From contig NC_133618.1 in NCBI RefSeq assembly GCF_048593235.1, forward strand, positions 48,022,478 to 48,086,477: DNA of 64,000 bases, read 5' to 3'. The notes beneath the pieces are model-generated. The model was not told the origin of the DNA. It did no database searches and saw only the letters and a list, made by a program, of their open reading frames with translations. The stretch is from Sminthopsis crassicaudata (Eukaryota). Positions 3,001 through 40,999 of the stretch are shown here, piece after piece. A program made the position numbers and the translations under genes. The number at the start of each line of letters is the position of its first letter. Position 1 is the stretch's first letter.

Positions 3001-3051
3001 TGTCTGACACACAATAGCTGCTCAGTAAATCGCTTTTCGGTTTCTCTGCAG

Positions 3052-3156
3052 TGGTGCCGATGATCTGTTACCCATCCTGTCTTATGTGGTGTTGAAGAGT
3101 AACCTCCCCCAGCTGGTGTCTGAGTGTGCAGCCCTGGAGGAATTCATCCACGAGGG
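3052..3156 (+). CDS. VPS9D1: VPS9 domain-containing protein 1, penultimate coding exon
   Basis: Acceptor tttctctgcag, donor GG|gtag. Translates (x)[34 protein letters not shown](G), the VPS9-domain GADDLLP motif as in human VPS9D1. Upstream exons were not found and probably lie left of the window. Confidence 0.95.
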
Positions 3157-4419
3157 GTAGGGGTGAGATCAATGCTGAAAGGGCCAGGGAGGCTGGAAGA
3201 GATAAGGGTGGGCTCCTGTGAATCTTTCAGGAAGGGCTTGCTCCTCTTTGAACTGAAATTTGGCTGCTGGAAGGAGATTTGGAGAAAGGGCTAGAATTGG
3301 TCCCAGAAGTCCGGGAACTCTTGGCTGGGTCACTGATCGGGTCAGTCAACATCCTGGGTCGTGATTCAGAAATACTCTATAATTAGCAGTCATTACACAG
3401 ATAGTTACATGGAGTGGGTGCTTTCCTTGCCATGGCCCTGTTTATCTTAAAATTGTTTAGTCTCTCTCTTTCCCATACATACCCTGCTGACTTTGTTCAA
3501 CCTGGAGTCTCTCCTTAAATCCTCTCCTCTTTCTAGGAAGTTAATAAGAGCATTGACTCCTTAGGCCTTTTTTTTTTTTTTTTTTTTTTTAAGCTGAAAT
3601 CATTAGAAGACAAACAGAAAAGAAAGATATAATTATGTCATCCCCACTCTCCCTTCCATTGTGTCCTCCCTTTGCCCTCATCACCATGGATGTGGGAAGA
3701 AAAGGCAGGAAGTCACCCCTCTCTGGGGTCAGAGCCATTTGCTCACTAGCTGACAGTTCTGCTTATGAAACTGGACATCTTGGCAGCCTCCCTGGGGTAT
3801 GACTTGGGAAGCAAGCTGAACCACTGGACCTTGGAGTCATCTGAACCTTAATGTGATAGGACAGGAAAGGGAGGGAGACCGAAGGTAAAGGTGGAGCTTG
3901 AATGTTATGGAAAGCAATATCTCTGGGAGCATAGGCACCTGCCAGAGAGACCTCGGAGCTGTTTGGACCCCTGCCTTCCAGTCACTTAGCCATTTCTTGG
4001 AGCTGTCTTCCTCAGTCTCTTGGGGTATACACAGACAGAGCTCCTCTCATTCTCAGCAAGGCCACATTTTTTATTTACAAGGGCAAGAGTTGCTAAGATC
4101 CATAACCCTTTGGCCCATCAAATGTCCTCCAGGTTGGATAAAAACTGGAGTGTCAGTTTGTAGAGTTGAGTATATCTCTAACTTCACCATGAGCTCCCTA
4201 TTCCATTGGAGCCTTTGGGTCTCCAGGGCACTGCACCCAATAGGTGCTCAGTAAATGCTTATTGAGGTTCCTTCCAGCTTCTTGGTCTGCTGCGGGCAGA
4301 AGCAAATGAAGCAGCTGCATGTGCCCGACATTGGAGGGACTTCAGCCCAGGTGTGACGCAGAGACCGATGGCACAGGGTTGCCACCCTGACAGTGGCTTC
4401 TGTATGACTTTTGTGCCAG

Positions 4420-4513
4420 GTATCTGATTGGAGAAGAAGGCTACTGTCTGACCTCGCTACAGAGTGCCCTGAGCTATGTGGAACTGCTGCCACGGGGGGC
4501 TTTGGTGAAGTAG
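4420..4513 (+). CDS. VPS9D1: VPS9D1 last coding exon
   Basis: Acceptor gtgccag; phase 2 matches the previous exon. (G)[30 protein letters not shown], near-identical to the human C-terminus. Confidence 0.95.
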
Positions 4514-14805: not shown

Positions 14806-14982
14806 TCACAGCTTCCCATCTGAGGTCAAGACCTGAAGATCAGCAGGGGAGTTTACACACAGCACAGTGTGTGAGACAGCAAGCTTATCCACCAGGGAGG
14901 CCACAGCCTGGCCCACCTCCAGGTGGCTGACATAGCCAGGAGCCAGTGCTTCGGGGAGTGCAACCCCCATATTGATCTTCAC
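14806..14982 (-). CDS. SDR-like Rossmann-fold protein, exon 6 (last)
   Basis: Acceptor ctgcccaccatccag, phase 0. VKINMGVALPEALAPGYVSHLEVGQAVASLVDKLAVSHTVLCVNSPADLQVLTSDGKL*. Confidence 0.88.
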   Translation of the reverse strand: MKINMGVALPEALAPGYVSHLEVGQAVASLVDKLAVSHTVLCVNSPADLQVLTSDGKL

Positions 14983-15117: not shown

Positions 15118-15523
15118 NNNNNNNNNNNNNNNNNNNNNNNNNNNNNNNNNNNNNNNNNNNNNNNNNNNNNNNNNNNNNNNNNNNNNNNNNNNNNNNNNNN
15201 NNNNNNNNNNNNNNNNNNNNNNNNNNNNNNNNNNNNNNNNNNNNNNNNNNNNNNNNNNNNNNNNNNNNNNNNNNNNNNNNNNNNNNNNNNNNNNNNNNNN
15301 NNNNNNNNNNNNNNNNNNNNNNNNNNNNNNNNNNNNNNNNNNNNNNNNNNNNNNNNNNNNNNNNNNNNNNNNNNNNNNNNNNNNNNNNNNNNNNNNNNNN
15401 NNNNNNNNNNNNNNNNNNNNNNNNNNNNNNNNNNNNNNNNNNNNNNNNNNNNNNNNNNNNNNNNNNNNNNNNNNNNNNNNNNNNNNNNNNNNNNNNNNNN
15501 NNNNNNNNNNNNNNNNNNNNNNN
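15118..15523. other. Assembly gap (406 N) in intron 5 of the SDR-like gene
   Basis: Run of N; the exons on either side join in frame without it. Confidence 0.99.
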
Positions 15524-16295: not shown

Positions 16296-16420
16296 CTCAT
16301 TCAGCTTACAGGGTACATCAGGGTATTCCTCACGAACCACCTTGCTGAAGGATAGAGCCCCTGCGGCCCCCAGGGTGAGGAAGCCTGTGCCCGGCCTGAG
16401 CAAATGATCTCCTGCCCCCC
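16296..16420 (-). CDS. SDR-like protein, exon 5
   Basis: Acceptor ccactctcttctag (phase 1), donor GAG|gtaagg (phase 0). (G)GAGDHLLRPGTGFLTLGAAGALSFSKVVREEYPDVPCKLNE. Confidence 0.88.
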
Positions 16421-16560
16421 CTAGAAGAGAGTGGAAAGGTGGGATAGAAGCTGGGCAAATGATCTCCTGCCCCCCCTAGAAGAGAGTGGAAAGGTGGGAT
16501 AGAAGCTGGGCAAATGATCTCCTGTCCCCCCCAGAAGAGAGTGGAAAGGTGGGATAGAAG
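16400..16560. repeat. 55-bp tandem repeat x3 spanning the exon-5 splice acceptor
   Basis: Unit gcaaatgatctcctgccccccctagaagagagtggaaaggtgggatagaagctgg starts at 16400, 16455 and 16510; the third copy has 2 substitutions. Confidence 0.97.
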
Positions 16561-16693
16561 TAGGGCATCCAGTTGTGAGGTGAGACAGAAGGGGATCACT
16601 CTGCTGGGGCTCCCCCACCCCCAGGGGACTCTAGAATGGCACCGACCTGTTGGTCACCTTGCTTATTGCTCAGTTCCAGGGGCAGAGCCTCAC

Positions 16694-16790
16694 CTGTGAT
16701 AAAAGTGTATGAGCCCCTCGGGTTCTCCCAGACCAGGGGAAAGAAGGCTTTCCAAGCAGTGAAGGTACTCAGGAGCAAGGTCTCCAGGAC
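16694..16790 (-). CDS. SDR-like protein, exon 4
   Basis: Acceptor ctcctgcttag (phase 0), donor ACAG|gtgagg (phase 1). VLETLLLSTFTAWKAFFPLVWENPRGSYTFIT(G). Confidence 0.9.
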
Positions 16791-16902
16791 CTAAGCAGGA
16801 GGGAGCTTTTTCTTAGCTACAATTCTCCTTGCCTTTCCTTCTCGCCCTCCCCCACTGCTATCCTCTTCCCTTGTTCCTCCCTCTCCTCACAGCCCCTCTT
16901 AC

Positions 16903-17042
16903 CCACTGTAGTTCCTTCAGGCTCTGAGTGTGGGGTGCTCCCCCTTGCCACCAGCTGAAGCCCAAAGAGGAGACCACATCAGTGACCTTCCTGCCTCCTT
17001 CCAGCAAGGACACCTTCGCTGCTTCTGCTCCATCCTCAGTGC
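16903..17042 (-). CDS. SDR-like protein, exon 3
   Basis: Acceptor ttccctctgcag (phase 1), donor TGG|gtaaga (phase 0). (S)TEDGAEAAKVSLLEGGRKVTDVVSSLGFSWWQGGAPHTQSLKELQW. Confidence 0.9.
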
Positions 17043-18152
17043 CTGCAGAGGGAAAGGGAGCCAAGGGGGTGGGTAAGAGACTGGAGCTCTCCCTTCCCTC
17101 TGTCCTGTCTTGGAGAAAGCTACTGAGAAGTTCTCTGAAGACAGCCACATTTCTCTAGGAGAGAGCGTGTCAGGGTACCTAAGGGAAGGAGTATTCTTCA
17201 TTTGTCATTCCTAGATCATCCTAGCCCCAGATCGCTCTTAGGAGCTGCCCAAAATTGGGGAGCCCCAGAGCAGCCTCTTGCTGTGCCATAGTGTTTGCCC
17301 TCTGGAGTCAGAGGACCAGGATTCAAATCCCATTTCCAACACTTACTATCCCTGTGATTTGGGCCAAATGTTTAATCTCTATGGGCCTCGATTTCTTCAA
17401 TCATCTACGAATGGAAAGAGTTCTGGACCTGTCCTCAGGGGCCTGGATCCTTTTCAGATGGGAGCAGGATAAGATGGCCACTGAAAGCCCTTTCGGTTCT
17501 GAAATTCAGGCCTGTGATGTGAATTCAAATCCGGCTCTTCTCTGAACAAGCTGCTGGTTAAACAGCTCTGGGGTTGTTTTCTTATCTGTAAACTGAAGAG
17601 GTGTATTAACTCACAGATTTAGAGCTGGATATGATTCCCTTCTGGATACTTTATACTCTTTACAAACTGAATGACTTTTCTCTTTGTCAGCCAACAGGTA
17701 TTTATTAAACACTTACTGTTTGCAGGGCCCTGTGTTCTCCTGCCTCTATGCCTTTGCTTATGTTATTCCCTATGTTTATGATGTCCCCCACTTCCCAACT
17801 TCAAATGCTATAAATGTAACAAGATGGGATCATCAGGGCTTTGTCCCAAAGGAGACAATGTAGAGAACACAGACAGTAATATCATCAGTACTTCCTAGTG
17901 TCTCAAAGTACCACCCCCCCTTTCAGTGATTGCTCATGGCTACGCAGGTAATGTCAGAAATGGAATATGAACTCAAGTCTTCTGATACCAAATCCAACAC
18001 TCTTTCCACTGCTCTGCCTCCAGAGCAAAAGTTCTTAATTTTCAGTCTGTGAACTTTTTAAAAATTTTAAAATAATATTTTATTTTTCCCCAATTAAATA
18101 TTAAAACAATCTTCCTTTTTCACATTTAAATTTTACTTTTTTTAGGTTTCAC

Positions 18153-18301
18153 TTTCTTTTTTTCTTTTTTCTGAGGCTGGGGTTAGTGACTTGCCCAGGG
18201 TCACACAGCTAAGAAGTGTTAAGTGTCTGAGACCAGATTTGAACTCGGGTCCTCCTGAATTAAAGGCTGATGCTCTATCCACTGCGCCCCCTAGTTGCCC
18301 C
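18153..18301 (-). mobile_element. WSINE1-type CORE-SINE nested in a MITE remnant
   Basis: Reverse complement begins ggggcaactagggggcgcagtggatagagc, has B-box gagttcaaatc and a T-tract tail on +. Confidence 0.9.
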
Positions 18302-18756
18302 TCAGTTTCAATTTCTATCCCTCCAACAGTTTGGCAGAAAAAAAAAATTGACAATTGTATTTTAATAGAATTTATTTCCTTTATAAAACTATGCATTTTA
18401 ATTTGTGCATTTAAAAACATTATTTTGAGGAAGGGGACAGGCTTTACCAGCCTGATTAAAGAGTCCAGCAAAGATTAAAAGCCCTGCTTTAGGGTACTAT
18501 TCCTTTCAGTATTCATGTATGAATCTCTGACTGAAGGTGCTGGATTAAATTCAGGAAGCTCAGAGGCAAGTTCTCACCTTTCTTTCCCCTCAGCCTTCAG
18601 CTTTGGTCCCTGCTGGCTCCTCCCTGTACATTTCTCCCCAGAACACATGAAGAGTTCACATTAGCTCTTGGTGCAAGACCAAGACCCAGCCCCACTGGCA
18701 GGGGCACTCCCAGAACCCCTGTCGCACCCCACCCTAGAGCAGAGGTAGTGACTCAC

Positions 18757-18864
18757 TGACATCCCCGACCACAGTAAACAGGCGATTGTGGGCTTCTGCA
18801 GGTAGGAAGTTCCGAAGCTTCTCCAGGCGTGTGGCATCCCGGGAAATGACAGCAACTTGGAACC
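18757..18864 (-). CDS. SDR-like protein, exon 2
   Basis: Acceptor cctccacctccatag, donor GTCA|gtgagt, phase 1/1. (G)FQVAVISRDATRLEKLRNFLPAEAHNRLFTVVGDV(S). Confidence 0.9.
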
Positions 18865-20596
18865 CTATGGAGGTGGAGGAAGGTCAGGAGGTAGAATCAA
18901 GAATCTACAGGGTGGGATCCCACTGGCCAAAAGTGTGGCCAGGAGAATCTCTGTCAAAGCTGGCCCTATACACAAATGAATCCCAGAAATTTAGAATTAG
19001 AAGCCCCAGAAACCATCTGATCCAAATAACATGAGAAAGTAAAATTAGAGGAGACGAGAATTCAAATCTCAATTGTCACTTCCTTTAATTTTAGGCAAGG
19101 CTTCCTTACTTGGGCTTTGATTTTCTCATCTCTAAAATGAGAGAGCTGATAGATGAAGATTATGGAATAATATTATTCTTCTGTAAAAATTGATGAACAA
19201 GCTGATTTTAGAAAGGCCTGGAAAGATTTACACAAAGTGACACTGAGTGAAACAAGCAGAACCAGTAATGCATTGTACACAATGATAGCAAATATATTTG
19301 ATGATCAACTATGAAAGACTTGGTTATTCTTAGTGGTTCAGTGATCCAAAGCAATCCCAATAGACTTTGGACAGAAAATGCCATCTGTAGCCAGAAAAAG
19401 AACTGTGGAGACTGAATATAAATCAACACATTTCACTTCTTTTTTTTTTTCCTCTCCCATGGTTTTTCTTTTTTGGTTTGCTTTTCCTCTCTCAATATGG
19501 TTCATAAAGCAATGTGTATTAAAAATAAATAAATTTTCAAAAATTTAAAACAAAAAAAATGAGCTGGGAGATATCAAAGTCAAAGGAGACCAGGGTTCAA
19601 GTATCAGCTCTGCTAGTTCCTTTAACATTAGACAAAGCTTCTCCGACTTGGGCTTCCATTTCCTCATCTCTAAAAGGAGAAAGCTTGAAGACTCAGAGTC
19701 ACTTCATCTTTGTTTTGTCTGTTTGTTTCATTGGGGCTTAGGAAGCCCATAGAATTCTCAGAATGATTAATATTTCTAAAATTCATAATTGTTAAATTGC
19801 TGGATTTCACTAAAATATTAGTGAAAATGAAGACTTTTTTTTTCACCCAAGTTCATGGAGCCCCTGAAATATATATGCATGGACTCCAGGTTAAGAATCC
19901 CTGGATTGAATACTTTCTATTTGAATTTTCTAGGACTATAACCATTTCATTTTATGGGCTAAATGATGTCCAGATTTAAATAGTCTGGCCCAGGGTGACC
20001 CAGATAAGGAGTGTGGGAGATGGGGATTGGGAGGATCGGAACCCTGGATCCAGTCCTGCCTGTCCTGGGATCTACAACTGGGATGTTCTCCTTAGGGTTC
20101 TGGCCATTTCTCATCCCATCTCTGCACATCCTTCCCTTTCCAAGTGCACTGGAAAAGAAAGAGCTTTAGAAAAAAAAAAAGCAGCACTTAATCAGCCTCT
20201 ACGGAAATCCCGGGGCTGGATTGGAATGAAAAATATGGGTTTAACTCCTTCCCAGGTGCTGGGAGAGTATCCTTCCAGGATCTTGGGGAGTGAGACTGGA
20301 TTTACATCCCCAGCAAGGTCAAGTGGAAAGCACATCGGATTTGGATTTATAGTCAAAGGACTTCTGTTCAGAATTCGACCTTGCTACTTTCCACCTGTGT
20401 GACCTCTTTGGGTCTCGTATCCCCTTTTGTAAAATGGCAACTTGGACTCAAGTTCCTTCTAGTTCTAAATCCTATGACCCAGGCTTGCTCAATCTGGGAT
20501 TTCCTAATACTCCCACCCTGTATCCACCTGTGGCTTCGAGCTCCCCCCCCCCGGGGGCCATGATCCCCCCCATCACCCTCTCCCCGAATCCCTCAC

Positions 20597-20681
20597 CCTT
20601 CTCCAGGAGCGACTTCACAATCCCAGAGCCCACGGTCCCAGCTCCTCCCAGCACGAGGACCAGGCGCTCAGAAGGGGACAT
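20597..20681 (-). CDS. Short-chain dehydrogenase/reductase-like (NAD(P)-binding Rossmann fold) protein, exon 1; gene = join of 20681-20597, 18864-18757, 17042-16903, 16790-16694, 16420-16296, 14982-14806 (732 nt, 243 aa)
   Basis: ATG with A at -3, donor AAGG|gtgagg. MSPSERLVLVLGGAGTVGSGIVKSLLEK(G) carries the Gly-rich GxxGxxG dinucleotide-binding motif. The six exons join with matching phases and no internal stop. Confidence 0.9.
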
Positions 20682-21589
20682 ACTGCCCGGGAGGATGCCC
20701 TGCAGACCAAGCGAAGGCTGGACGGGGAGGGGATATTAAGTAGAGAAGGTTCCTTAGCCGTCTCGCCCTTGGAGGCCGTCGCTGGCCAATCCCTCAGCAC
20801 TCTGTAGGGAGTGGCTCCGCCCCCCGGGCTGTCAGCCAACTCCCGAATCTCGCCTTCTGATTTCCTAGATCTCCTAAGTAGTCGGTCTGGGACGTGGAAC
20901 TGCAAAGCAGTTTGCAAATTATAGGCTCGAACTCTCAGCTTACGGAGAGGGCAAGAAAATTGCCCGGAATCCTAGGTCAACTCTTCCAATCCGTCCCACA
21001 ACAATTATTTCCCTCTCCAACAACAGCTGGCATCTATGTAATGCTTGAAAAAGCTTTGCAAAGCACTTTCTATGATGTTTCACTTGATTCTCACAACCAT
21101 CTTGTAGGTATTTTTATTATCTCCATTTTACAAATGAAGAAACTGAGATTTAAAGGGACCGAATTTCAGGCCAGTCTTGTGATGGAGAGAGCCATCTGCA
21201 CCCAGAGAAAGGATTGTGGGAACTGGGTGTGGATCACAACACAGCATTCTCACTCTTCTTGTTTGCTTGTATTTTGTTTTCCTTCTCATTTTTCCCCTTT
21301 TTGATCTGATTTTCTTGTGCTGCATGATAATTGTGGAAATACATATAGAAGAATTGCACATGTTTGACATCTAGGGCAGAGGGTGGGGAGAAAGGGAGGG
21401 AAAAAATTTGGAACACAAAGTTTTGTAAAGGGTGAATGTTGAAAATTATCCACGAATATATTTTGAAAATAAAAAGCTTTAGTTAAAAAGGGGAGGGGGA
21501 CCAAATTTGAACTCAGGTCTTAGTGGCTTTCAGGTCTTTTCCATGCACCTACTTGTCTCACCAAACTTCTTCAACAAGTGGTCATCCAT

Positions 21590-21770
21590 CAAATAATAGT
21601 TGTCGTTTTTCAGCCGTGTTCAACTCCTTGTTTTCTTGGCAAAAATGCTGGGAGCGATTTGCCATTTCCTTCTCCAACCCGTTTTACAGATAAGAAAACT
21701 GAGGCAAACAGGGTTAAGTGACTTGCCCAGCGTCACACAGCCAATGCCTGAGACTGTATCTGAACTACTG
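21590..21770 (-). mobile_element. Mar1-type marsupial SINE
   Basis: gcgatttgccatttccttctcc...ttttacagataagaaaactgaggcaaacagggttaagtgacttgcccag. A MIR-like element follows at ~21800-22060. Confidence 0.7.
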
Positions 21771-22399
21771 AAGAGCACTCTGTCCAGTGAGTCTTCTAGT
21801 AGCTAATAATAACAACAATAGTAACGGTAGCTAGCATTTATAAAGGGATTATTATATGCAGGTACTGTGCTAAACACTTTACAAACATTCTATCATTTGA
21901 TCCTCACAACAACCCTGGAAGGTAGATACTATCATTATCACCCCTGTTTTACATTTGAGGAAACTGAGGCAGAAAGAGATTAAATGACTTGCTCCGAGTC
22001 ACCCACGTAAGACACCCAAGGGTGTGAGGCAGAATCTGAATTCAGGTCTTGCTGCCTTTGGTGGCAAAGGGATGGCATCCGGGGCCTGGAGTCTGAGCGC
22101 GGCGACTTGCGGCTTGTGGTCCTCGGCTCTATCCGCTGACCGGCCTCGCTGTCTCGGAGTCCTTGGGAATTCACTCCACATTTGGAGAGCGCTTTCTGCA
22201 CACTAAGCCCAAAATAACCTTTCTCCAGTTTCTGCCCTGGATTTTGCCGTTCTTCGGAGACTGGCATCAGGCCCGATGGTTTGGCCTCCAAACTCCGGTG
22301 CTTTCTATGTCCCAATGGCTTTCCTTTTTCCCAGAGCGCACTGTAGAACAGCATCAAAAAGCTGAGGTTTCTATGGCCACGACCCACCTCCAAGCCCTG

Positions 22400-24500
22400 C
22401 TTACACCTCCGCGAGCCTTCCAAGGGTTGGCAGTGCCCTCTGCGGGGCCAGCTTTGTGTCCCTGGGTTGGGGGCTGTGTTTGTGGCACGACCCTCCTCGG
22501 TCTGGGCCTTGAGGTCTCCCGCGGGTCTGAGCTCTGGGCCGCGGGCGGGATGGGCAGGCCCGAGGCCAGCTTCTACCGCCTGGGAGCCAGCTCGGGCCTC
22601 CGTGGCCCGGTGTTGCCCCTGGCGTCCCAGGGAGACTGTGGCAGCGGGAGGGAGGTGGGCAGAGGAGGGAAGGGCCGGACGGCCCCGGCTCCGTCGCTGC
22701 CACAGGGAACACTCGTGGTTAGAACTGGGAAGAGTCCGGGGCTGTTGTCCCCGCCCAGGCTCTCAGAAGGGCTCGCGGCAAAGCGGGGCCAGGCTGGGAC
22801 GGGAGCCCAGACCTGGTCTCAGTGCGAGTCTTCGGTGCCCCGACGCCTGGGGAGGAAACGTCGCTTCCCCAAGAGCGAGGCGCCTCGGGCAGAGCGCGCG
22901 ATTTTCCCGGCGCTCTCGGGCCGCTGCCGGACCGAGGGGAGCCCCCCCCCCCACTTGAGTCGTGAGTTTTGGATCACAGAACTTCCAAACCCTCTGACTC
23001 CAGAGCGCAGCGGCGCCGTGAGCCCGCGAGCCGGGGGGCACGACCCTCTCCTCCTGCACAGGAGGAAACTGTCCCGGAGGACAGGGCTTGGCTACTGCCA
23101 CACAGCTACCCCGACCTCCGGAGCCCGAATCTGATGAGGTGAAGAATCGAAGCGCTCCTGATCCCCGGTGCGGGCCCTCCCCTTTTCACCAGCGCCCCTC
23201 ACCCACACCCCTCCCTTCTCTGGAGAAACCCCTCATCTCCTTCGGTCCGGCGAGGACACAGTTAAACTTCCAAATTGGGCGGGGACGGGGGGGCGGAACC
23301 CCAAACCCCGCCCCACATGCGTCAGCCCTCGTGTCTGACCAATGGGGGGGCGAGACCCCCGCGAAGCCGGAAGGGCCCTGTGGGTCCATTGGGCTCCGGG
23401 CTGTGCGGCGGGCGTTGGAGGCGACTCCTGGAACCTGGACAGGTAAAGACGCCTCCCCGGCTTCCCGCCTCCCCTTCCCTTTCCCGTCCTCACCCCAGGC
23501 TGCCATCTGGGGGCGGCCTGAGCCCGGGTCTCCGGGGGAGCACATCTGGCTTGGCTTGGCAGTCTGGGGTGGGGAGGAGTGCTGCGCTGGGGAGGGGGTC
23601 CTGGAGGAGGCCGGGGGGGGGAACTTCGCACCTAACCCCCCACCTCCCCCACCCCCAGGATGGGCGCCAGCTCCCTGTCGGAGGATTACCGTCTGTGCTT
23701 GGAGCGGGAGCGGCGGAGGGGCGGCTCGGGCGTCTGTGCAGACCCCACTCTGCGGGCCGTGCTCTGGCAGATCCTCGTGGAGGACTTCGACCTCCACGGG
23801 CTGCTCCAGGACGACGCCCTGGCCCTCTTCACCGATGGGCTGTGGGGCCGAGGCGATCTGGCCCCTGCCCTGCGCAACCTGGCGCGGGCGTTCGAGCTGC
23901 TGGAGCTGGCCGCCGTCCACCTCTACCTCTTTCCCTGGAGGAAGGAGTTCACCACCATCAAGGTAGAAGCGGGCGGGATGTCCCAGCTCTGCGTGGCCGA
24001 GGGCCCGGGATCTGCCGGGAGCTCCTGGGGCTGGGCCCGAGTGGTGTGCGGCTACGGGATGGGGGCGGGGAGCGGGGAGAAGCACGACACGCGGGGGGAG
24101 GGGGGGAGAAGGGGGAAGGGGCCCTGCCTGCCCTTTCTGGGGCTTCCGAACTTCTCCGCCCGGCCGCCAGCGCCCAGGAAGGTGCCCGCGCTCCCCAAGC
24201 CTCCTTTCCCCCCGGCGCCTCTCAGGCACCGGCAGCTTTGTTGGAGCGGGACTAAGTAGCTTTGCAGGGTAGCGGAACGTGGGCAGGCTTTGGGGTCAGG
24301 TTCAAGTCCCTTTCCGTGCCTCGGTGTCCCCACGTGTAAAACGCCCATGTGGGACCCGAGCGACTCCTCCAATCCTGCGAGCAGATGGGTGACCCCCGAA
24401 GTCACGCAGCATGAGGACGGATTAGGGGGCGGGCCCGGGTCCCGAGCGGGTGAACATCCTGCACCTGCCCTCATTTCACCCTCTCGCCTCCTGTTTATTC
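22400..24500. promoter_or_regulatory. CpG island / SPATA2L promoter, with likely non-coding exon 1 ending at donor 23443 (GGACAG|gtaaag)
   Basis: Visibly CpG-dense, with GC boxes and a CCAAT box (gaccaatgg at ~23338). A strong donor lies upstream of the acceptor (ccccag) at 23657-23658, just before the ATG. Confidence 0.75.
23660..23962 (+). CDS. SPATA2L: Spermatogenesis-associated protein 2-like, first coding exon (PUB domain)
   Basis: MGASSLSEDYRLCLERE...LELAAVHLYLFPWRKEFTTIK, donor AAG|gtag; matches the human SPATA2L N-terminus. Confidence 0.96.
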
Positions 24501-25223: not shown

Positions 25224-26228
25224 ACATTTTCGGGGGGCTACGTCCACTTCCTGAAGGGCGTGCTCTCGGAGGACCTCATCACCAAGTGCTTCCAGAAGAT
25301 GGGCTACACGAGGAAGGACCAGCACCACTTGGTCGTGGCCACGCCACCGCCGGGCTACGAGCTCATTCAGGTGGCTCTAGGCTGCTTTGCTCTGAGGTTG
25401 GAGTGCGAGATCCTCGGGGAGATCCTGACCAAGCTGGGGACCAGCCTGCTGTCTGCCGAGGAGCTGATCGAGGAGCGAAGAGCCAGTGGGGATGTGGACA
25501 CGTGCGTGGACCGGCTGAGGCGGCGGCTGGCTGGAACCGGAACGCCGCCCACCAGACCTCTGCTTAGTTACCCCGCTGGCATTGATTTGTACAGTGACAT
25601 GCTGGAAGAAGGGCCCGAGGATGGTTCTTTGTATGGTGAGCCCCTTACTGGGCCAGAGTCGCCCTCTCCAGAGTTAGCCTACCAACCCCCCATCTGGGAA
25701 CAGAGTGCCAAACTGTGGGGCACCAGCCAGATGGCCTCCAGCGCCAGGGAGCTTCGGGACAACGGGAGCAGCTGGGAGTCTCCAAGCGTGGAGGAGCCGG
25801 TGGAGGAGAGCCTGTCCTATGAAGCTTTTGAGGAACCCACGGAAGAGAGAACCACCTTCTCCTTCATCGCCCTGCGGAGGGAGCTGACCACAGAAGTTGC
25901 CGGGGGCAAGAGCCCCATCCGTTCCCCTCGGCACCTCAGGGCCACCGGGCACCTTGAGGCCGCTGAAGGGGCCCCTGCTTCTCCCTCTGCCTCTGGTGGG
26001 GAGCCCCAACGCTACCAGCTTCACGGTTGCCTGCCAGTAGGCACTCTGCCCGCTTACTGCTGCGATACGTGCTGCCAGCTCCATGCCAGCCACTGCCAGG
26101 CCCTCTATAACTGCCGCCTGGATCACACACTGCATGAGCTGCTGAGCGAGAAGCAGCGACGTCTCTGGCTGCAGAGGACCCAGCTGGACTCCCTGCTTTA
26201 TGAGAGTCCCCCTAGAGCCAGGCCCTAG
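25224..26228 (+). CDS. SPATA2L: SPATA2L last coding exon (total 435 aa)
   Basis: Acceptor ttcttggttccag. TFSGGYVHFLKGVLSEDLI...CCDTCCQLHASHC...RRLWLQRTQLDSLLYESPPRARP*. Confidence 0.96.
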   Translation, partial: TFSGGYVHFLKGVLSEDLITKCFQKMGYTRKDQHHLVVATPPPGYELIQVALGCFALRLECEILGEILTKLGTSLLSAEELIEERRASGDVDTCVDRLRRRLAGTGTPPTRPLLSYPAGIDLYSDMLEEGPEDGSLYGEPLTGPESPSPELAYQPPIWEQSAKLWGTSQMASSARELRDNGSSWESPSVEEPVEESLSYEAFEEPTEERTTFSFIALRRELTTEVAGGKSPIRSPRHLRATGHLEAAEGAPASPSASGGEPQRYQLHGCLPVGTLPAYCCDTCCQLHASHCQALYNCRLDHTLHELLSEKQRRLWLQRTQLDSLLYESPPRARP

Positions 26229-40155: not shown

Positions 40156-40721
40156 CTGAAACAGCAACAGAGCGGAGGAAGACCCCAAGCCAGAGCCCCG
40201 CCCCCTGCCTTGCCATTCCTGGGGGCAAGGGTCCTGTTTGCTCCAGGCTAGGGATTCAAAGACAGGCTTTAAACAACCCCTGCCCTGGGGCCGTGAGTCC
40301 TCTTACTGGGCTCTCAAATAGATGTAAAGTCCTGGGGGAAGAGGCTCCCACTTGGAGCACTAGGATTTCCAAGGAGAGCACAGGCCCCTGCCCACAGTTA
40401 CGGAAATAGGCGACTGTTCCAGAAGGGGAAAGCACGTGCAGCAGTTTGGCCAAATGCCAAAGGAGAGGAAATGCGGGCGGGAGAGGGTGAAGGCCTCCAA
40501 AGGGAGCCCGATCCCGGGGGAAGCGGCGAAGCTTCTGGGGCACTTAGGCGGCCGATTAGCGGCGTGGTAATCAGACCAGAGATGGTGAGAGCGCAATCGG
40601 GGTGTGGGGGGAGAAGGTCGGGATGGCCTCTTTCTCCCACACAAGCTCCTCTTGGAACAGCCCGCCCCCCCCCTCCCCCAGCGCCGAGGTAACTGACATC
40701 TCCCGGCCGGCCCACACTCAC

Positions 40722-40794
40722 ACACGATGCCGTACGTGCCTTCCCCGATCCGGTTCAGTTTTTCGAACTCCTTCACGCTCCGGCACTGCCCCAG
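40722..40794 (-). CDS. CDK10: CDK10 exon 2
   Basis: LGQCRSVKEFEKLNRIGEGTYGIV(Y): Gly-rich loop. Confidence 0.98.
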
Positions 40795-40999
40795 CTGCAG
40801 GGGGAGGGAGACACGGCGCTCCTCTGAGCATCCCCCAGGGGGCCGGTGACAGCGCGACACCCGGAGGAGCTAAAGGAGCCTAGTTACACGTGAGGCCCGA
40901 GGGCAGGTCGGAACCTGAATCCACAGCACCCACGCAGGCCCGCCGACAGTCTCCTCCATAAATGTGCGCGTGCATGTGAATCTCGCTAAATTATATGCA

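Follow-up and report, generated by a model that had tools for sequence, protein, structure and literature searches.

An intact short-chain dehydrogenase/reductase-like gene of Sminthopsis crassicaudata belongs to a vertebrate family with a substituted catalytic tetrad

What can a protein of short-chain dehydrogenase/reductase (SDR) type do once it has kept the hallmarks of dinucleotide binding and lost its catalytic residues? The question is raised by a minus-strand gene in a stretch of 64,000 nucleotides of the Sminthopsis crassicaudata genome (contig NC_133618.1, positions 48,022,478–48,086,477; hereafter the window). An original prediction, made from the letters of the window, placed at 16296–20681 an SDR-like protein with a full cofactor site but no YxxxK catalytic motif, and proposed for it either a sensor in the manner of NmrA-like proteins or an enzyme with non-canonical chemistry. 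The locus is an intact dunnart orthologue of zebrafish si:dkey-238o13.4. We interpret its product, with a probability of roughly 45%, as a non-canonical NADP(H)-binding pseudo-dehydrogenase, probably oligomeric, which would act by binding a partner or ligand in its cleft.

Gene model and identity of the locus

Translation in all six frames, followed by a check of the exon junctions, gave a minus-strand gene of six exons, all of whose borders are GT-AG with consistent phases. The range of the original prediction covers exons 1 to 5, the sixth lying outside it. The exons are:

20681–20597, minus strand: exon 1, with the ATG at 20681, beta1 and the GxxGxxG motif as GGAGTVG (20648–20628); phase-1 donor.
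18864–18757, minus strand: exon 2, with beta2 ending in ISRD (18847–18836) and beta3 with VGDV (18769–18758).
17042–16903, minus strand: exon 3, with beta4 and the SSLGFSWWQGG loop (16971–16939) in place of NNAG.
16790–16694, minus strand: exon 4, with alphaE, the L116 codon (16778–16776; tetrad Asn position) and beta5 ending in FIT (16703–16695).
16420–16296, minus strand: exon 5, reading GAG...PGTGFLTLGAAGALSF, with F157 (16382–16380; Tyr position) and G161 (16370–16368; Lys position).
14982–14806, minus strand: exon 6, with the rest of beta6, a short beta6-alphaG loop, alphaG and beta7; stop codon at 14808–14806.

The G144 codon, at the Ser position, is split across the junction of exons 4 and 5, and FITGGAG is present only after splicing across this junction; read unspliced through the donor the sequence is FITGEA. 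The helix expected to carry the Tyr and Lys, GTGFLTLGAAGALSF, lies at 16391–16347 on the minus strand. Every motif named in the original prediction – GGAGTVG, ISRD, VGDV, SSLG with FSWWQGG, FITGGAG and this helix – was re-read at exact coordinates.

Using tblastn, the uncharacterized protein of Sminthopsis crassicaudata LOC141554360 (P0189) matched all six exons within their bounds at 100% identity, exon 1 corresponding to its residues 1–29. It is on this ground the protein of the window, and the RefSeq model is the six-exon model; P0189 served as query and reference in all later protein analyses. It is a small, soluble protein of 243 residues without extra domains. The traits of the si:dkey-238o13.4 group – a length of 243 amino acids, the signatures SLGFSWWQGG and PGTGFLT, and adjacency to CDK10 – are all found at this locus, CDK10 being represented in the window by a putative exon.

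Two further features of the gene may be recorded here. A run of 406 N (15118–15523) lies within intron 5 and touches no coding sequence. The interval 16396–16567 consists of 3.1 copies of a 55-bp unit (95% identity), which duplicate the exon 5 acceptor; an exact second copy of the acceptor, a candidate site, would begin exon 5 at 16475, adding 55 nucleotides and shifting the frame, and the RefSeq-identical model takes the 3'-most copy at 16420.

Loss of the catalytic tetrad

The tetrad was mapped by aligning a profile of 38 orthologues (A1; mean column identity 80%) with PDB sequences. The best match of the profile was to PECR (1yxm; E-value 3.7e-11, residues 6–138), and the alignments to 3l77 (residues 7–216) and 1vl8 (residues 5–180) ran through the active site. 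The latter two assign the canonical residues as follows:

Canonical Asn: L116.
Canonical Ser: G144.
Canonical Tyr: F157 in the 3l77 register, or L158 in the 1vl8 register.
Canonical Lys: G161 or A162.

Conservation was counted over 173 jawed-vertebrate members of 225–260 amino acids, ranging from sharks to marsupials. All four residues of the Asn-Ser-Tyr-Lys tetrad are substituted in each of the 173, and the substitutes are themselves nearly frozen: L116, G144, F157, L158 and G161 are invariant, together with G92, S94, W95, W96, K125, Y176 and C181, while A162 is present in 170 members and replaced by Ser in the other three. The NNAG expected after beta4 has become SSLG (S89 in 172/173, L91 in 171/173, G92 in all). 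After beta6, the 3l77 alignment has a gap opposite the PG motif of that protein; in the sequence alignment G191 is kept, with no Pro before it.

The absence of a Tyr/Lys pair from an SDR-fold protein, as originally proposed, was borne out, and extends to the Asn and Ser of the tetrad. P0189 possesses exactly three Tyr (139, 176 and 202), none of them with Lys at +4 and none belonging to a YxxxK or Yx6K motif; since Lys is also lacking throughout 126–169, no register allows a canonical pair. Nor do the homologues mostly carry YxxxK, a finding that the original prediction would have taken as a sign of lineage-specific decay: YxxxK or Yx6K stands at the catalytic place in 0/173 members, and the only two matches to these patterns fall at Y176 in one case and within a mis-predicted exon in the other. 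As the same strings recur in 173 orthologues, the motifs quoted here are far beyond chance. According to these alignments the loss of the tetrad is ancestral and conserved rather than a lineage-specific decay.

Cofactor site

The glycine motif LGGAGTVGSG conforms to GxxGxxG, the extended type, and the classical TGxxxGxG is absent. Directly after beta2, S36 and R37 (172/172 members) align with the 'SR' of PECR, 1vl8 and 3l77, and the exon 2 segment aligns with ASRKLERL of PECR. The dinucleotide-binding beta-alpha-beta unit retains GxxGxxG, the invariant Ser-Arg after beta2, and an Asp or Asn followed by Val after beta3. The preference for NADP(H) that had been proposed from the basic residue after beta2 is a reasonable reading of this alignment. 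The claim of a full cofactor site stands for one half: by sequence comparison the part of the site that receives the adenosine, 2'-phosphate and pyrophosphate is retained, while in the nicotinamide half the holding Lys and Tyr, the NNAG and, by the 3l77 alignment, the PG are gone.

Fold and pattern of constraint

P0189 contains an adh_short domain (PF00106; 42.8 bits against a cut-off of 26.6), residues 7–148 corresponding to profile positions 2–140 of 195; the match stops at residue 148, ahead of the Tyr/Lys helix. The score for adh_short_C2 was 27.5 against 27. AlphaFold2, run with the 38-orthologue alignment, predicted a one-domain classical SDR Rossmann fold with a mean predicted local distance difference test score (pLDDT) of 86.2 and a predicted template-modelling (TM) score of 0.89. 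The structural comparison that the original prediction had called for agreed with this. Foldseek matched the predicted model to classical SDRs at TM-scores of 0.72–0.79; VIA-align also retrieved classical SDRs (Z 23–24, 207–230 residues aligned), which form a flat plateau with, together with the Foldseek set, 13–23% identity. Among ESM Atlas clusters that of the family itself came first (TM 0.92); next were SDR clusters from Actinobacteria and Bacillota, with proteins of 244–247 amino acids (TM 0.83–0.85), and a chordate-rich cluster of 246 amino acids (TM 0.84), the last two groups being compared by structure only.

Conservation of the individual elements, expressed as the mean frequency of the commonest residue, was:

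Gly loop: 0.95.
beta4-alphaE loop (SLGFSWWQGG...): 0.95.
beta5: 0.94.
beta5-alphaF loop (GAGE.LL.PGTG): 0.94.
beta2 with SR: 0.91.
alphaF: 0.90.
Whole protein: 0.82.
C-terminus: 0.70.
beta7: 0.60.

The most constrained parts are the nucleotide-binding hallmarks and the two loops, SLGFSWWQGG and GGAGE.LL.PGTGFLT, which frame the former active site. WWQGG, earlier singled out as a candidate substrate or partner site, is invariant and lies within the most conserved loop. In helices alphaE and alphaF the conservation extends to nearly every face, 10 of 25 and 8 of 20 positions, respectively, being at least 99% conserved.

Relatives and distribution

Single exons screened against Pfam and NCBIfam gave nothing usable, and exon 3 alone found no match among PDB sequences. 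An exhaustive HMMER search with exon 3 yielded 33 vertebrate matches of 64–90% identity, and word searches with parts of two of these exon 3 relatives returned 218–246 vertebrate proteins, mostly of 243 amino acids and named after si:dkey-238o13.4. The relatives of the complete protein were taken from the best 120 of 208 matches to P0189. Other marsupials ranked first (85–93% identity), followed by the platypus (79%); turtles, squamates, tuatara, alligator and amphibians showed 72–79%, lungfish, bichir, sharks, rays and chimaera 61–73%, and teleosts 61–68%. Cluster look-ups added Sarcophilus, Antechinus, Trichosurus, Notamacropus, Dromiciops, Monodelphis and the echidna. A maximum-likelihood tree had short branches throughout, with 0.18 changes per column on the marsupial stem and 0.02–0.07 at its tips. 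An 1890-nucleotide Logan contig from a public sequencing run, a teleost orthologue by its protein, holds an uninterrupted open reading frame (ORF) of 243 codons, which accords with the transcript being spliced in one species at least.

Placental mammals and birds are not represented among the best 120 of the 208 matches. A placental orthologue would be expected to rank near the platypus, and its absence there suggests, without proving it, that the family has been lost or left unannotated in placental mammals, and likewise in birds. Bird assemblies often lack GC-rich regions, which limits what can be concluded from the absence in that group.

Bacterial homologues, which the original prediction had envisaged, did not emerge. 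When the two signature peptides were sought in 185,579 genomes of bacteria and archaea, 39 pattern matches emerged, none of which tblastn confirmed, and tblastn against plasmids found only generic similarity to SDR N-termini (28–31% identity over residues 21–147); neither search gave a bacterial counterpart with the signature motifs.

The koala, Phascolarctos cinereus, has two loci, LOC110210282 and LOC144457191, with proteins of 243 (P0204) and 268 (P0196) amino acids. LOC144457191 is 85% identical to P0189. The two may be one gene in two assemblies or annotations, or a duplicate.

Interpretation

At approximately 70% identity between sharks and marsupials the protein must do something important. 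As a pseudo-dehydrogenase it would retain binding to the ADP-2'-phosphate part of NADP(H), and the canonical Tyr/Lys proton relay would be closed to it; its action would be that of a protein which binds or regulates in dependence on NADP(H), rather than one of canonical catalysis. The remodelled cleft, made up of the Trp-Trp loop and the PGTGFLT loop, may accommodate a ligand or partner, and an oligomer would probably be formed through the strongly conserved alphaE and alphaF helices.

Several points weigh against this interpretation. SDR-fold enzymes without the Tyr/Lys pair exist, among them BLVRB and the PECR-related dienoyl-CoA reductases, and since enzymes such as BLVRB work without it, loss of the tetrad does not prove that catalysis was lost. 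The extreme conservation of the cleft is equally to be expected if it is the active site of an enzyme. Confidence in the model is lowest at the two cleft loops (pLDDT below 50 at residues 146–153; lowered from 91 to about 100–105, with ~69 at 91–100), and their geometry is not fixed by the model. Finally, the tetrad was mapped by sequence-profile alignments, which differ by one register.

The protein could instead be a true oxidoreductase or other NADP(H)-using enzyme with non-canonical chemistry, in which NADPH would be bound productively and hydride transfer helped by solvent or by invariant residues of the cleft, the candidates being T143, S94, Q97, H102, T155 and T159. Such an enzyme would account for the rank of the cleft loops as the most conserved elements and for the invariance of the Gly motif and S36-R37; it would also agree with the enoyl reductase PECR being the best sequence match among solved structures, with a small soluble protein devoid of added domains, and with lineage-specific loss, which is presumably more usual for metabolic enzymes. 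We nevertheless regard it as less likely than the pseudo-dehydrogenase, for every member lacks all the residues that normally fix the ribose and carboxamide of nicotinamide (Lys, Tyr and, by alignment, PG), and no evidence points to any substrate.

The near-complete conservation of alphaE and alphaF on all faces would also suit a non-catalytic subunit of a hetero-oligomeric SDR, which might pack these helices in a four-helix bundle with an active SDR and shape or stabilise the site of its partner. Precedents are BbsC in BbsCD and, in petunia benzaldehyde synthase, the beta subunit (PMC13418739), and the close structural matches include the HSD17B8/CBR4 heterotetramer. The same helices, however, fit a homodimer equally well and no candidate partner is at hand, while an invariant Gly motif and an NADP-type Arg are not obviously needed by a purely structural subunit; the petunia beta subunit itself is without a cofactor-contacting Arg (PMC13418739). 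By analogy with these precedents a subunit role is conceivable, though quite improbable.

That the gene is an ordinary SDR in decay, or a copy degenerate in one lineage, under relaxed selection might be argued from the fairly long marsupial stem, marsupial changes at near-invariant positions (for example P100A and M152R) and a duplicated exon 5 acceptor that could disturb splicing. On the sequences at hand this is refuted at the level of the family and essentially excluded, given an intact frame in six GT-AG exons identical to the RefSeq model, a Tyr-less state fixed in 173/173 members across jawed vertebrates, and short marsupial tips.

A wider and distinctly tentative proposal, which we think unlikely as a whole, is that a gene present once in jawed vertebrates, its sequence almost unchanged for ~450 million years, specifies a novel type of NADP(H)-binding protein whose cleft serves sensing or Tyr/Lys-free chemistry, and with which placental mammals, and possibly birds, have dispensed. 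If it were true, a classical SDR active site would have been rebuilt as a Trp-Trp/PGTGFLT binding cleft that humans do without. Given the absence of a placental orthologue among the best matches, human and mouse biology may have hidden this gene, and zebrafish, Xenopus and opossum would offer direct routes to its role.

Genomic neighbourhood

The window contains the following further features:

3029–3157 and 4391–4510, plus strand: exons with a VPS9 domain (Pfam VPS9; 36.5 and 25.2 bits), as would fit the 3' end of a VPS9D1 gene in tail-to-tail arrangement with the SDR gene.
25260–26225, plus strand: ORF with similarity to the SPATA2 PUB-like domain (SPATA2L-like; 25.4 bits, short of the curated cut-off, 27).
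40360–40860, minus strand: ORF reading VKEFEKLNRIGEGTYGIV, taken by eye as a putative CDK10 exon; it has no Pfam match.

The 90% cluster of the sturgeon SDR orthologues includes two proteins named CDK10, P0221 (555 amino acids, Acipenser ruthenus) and P0214 (294 amino acids, Brachyhypopomus), which look like read-through fusions of neighbouring genes. Since sturgeon and knifefish models join the SDR gene to CDK10, the CDK10 neighbourhood appears to be old and is conserved in ray-finned fish. On the minus strand the start of the SDR gene at 20681 faces a GC-rich stretch (GC 0.66 at 22–24 kb) located upstream of the SPATA2L-like plus-strand ORF, and the interval 20681–23700 looks like a shared bidirectional CpG-island promoter. 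MIR-type short interspersed nuclear elements were read in ORF translations of the window, and on their account this vertebrate DNA was judged to resemble that of marsupials.

Comparison with known systems

The gene is annotated but functionally undescribed. In the accessible literature si:dkey-238o13.4 is named only in tables of differential expression, and the LOC identifiers nowhere; its expression fell 4.5-fold in the liver of trout given oestradiol (PMC4556936) and was also down after brain injury in zebrafish (PMC5752677). Automatic names given to many orthologues include 'peroxisomal trans-2-enoyl-CoA reductase', '17-beta-hydroxysteroid dehydrogenase 14', 'L-fucose dehydrogenase-like' and 'rhamnolipids biosynthesis 3-oxoacyl-ACP reductase'. 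Because the catalytic residues are missing, these enzyme names are misleading and very unlikely to be correct.

PECR (1yxm), the alcohol dehydrogenase of Thermococcus sibiricus (3l77) and HSD17B14 (1yde/5ics) have the same fold and a similar length, at a sequence identity of only 14–23%. The 'SR' after beta2 is shared with the NADPH-dependent PECR and the short beta6-alphaG loop with 3l77. Unlike all three, the family has GxxGxxG instead of TGxxxGxG, SSLG instead of NNAG, and L/G/F/G instead of N-S-Y-K. An identity with PECR was rejected, since the match covers only residues 6–138 at ~21% identity and no peroxisomal C-terminal signal is conserved. Orthologues end variously in GKL, GNL, NNM, GQL and others, and with this variable C-terminus and an N-terminus that opens directly with beta1, peroxisomal or mitochondrial targeting was likewise rejected.

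The kinship with NmrA-like proteins put forward in the original prediction did not hold. The NmrA-like family (PF05368) scored 20.8 bits against a cut-off of 27, over the first beta-alpha-beta unit only (residues 6–46); no NmrA-like chain was among the best 50 structural matches in Foldseek and VIA-align, and all the best matches listed were classical SDRs. NmrA and HSCARG (NMRAL1) are similar in combining a Rossmann fold bearing GxxGxxG with the lack of a catalytic Tyr and a proposed sensing role; unlike them, the present protein has no larger C-terminal domain.

The family is an uncharacterized member of a known category, the catalytically atypical SDRs. To our knowledge, very few SDRs devoid of catalytic residues reach this degree of conservation, and the si:dkey-238o13.4 family is not one of those already known. 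Inactive yet conserved SDRs include BbsC of BbsCD and the petunia benzaldehyde synthase (PhBS) beta subunit (PMC13418739), as well as HSDL1 (Meier 2009 as cited in PMC9859523). The present family resembles these three in its SDR fold, in the loss of tetrad residues and in being conserved nonetheless. It differs from them, each of which is known to have lost one or two tetrad residues, in the loss of all four and, by alignment, of the PG motif as well, and the kinship is at the level of the superfamily only.

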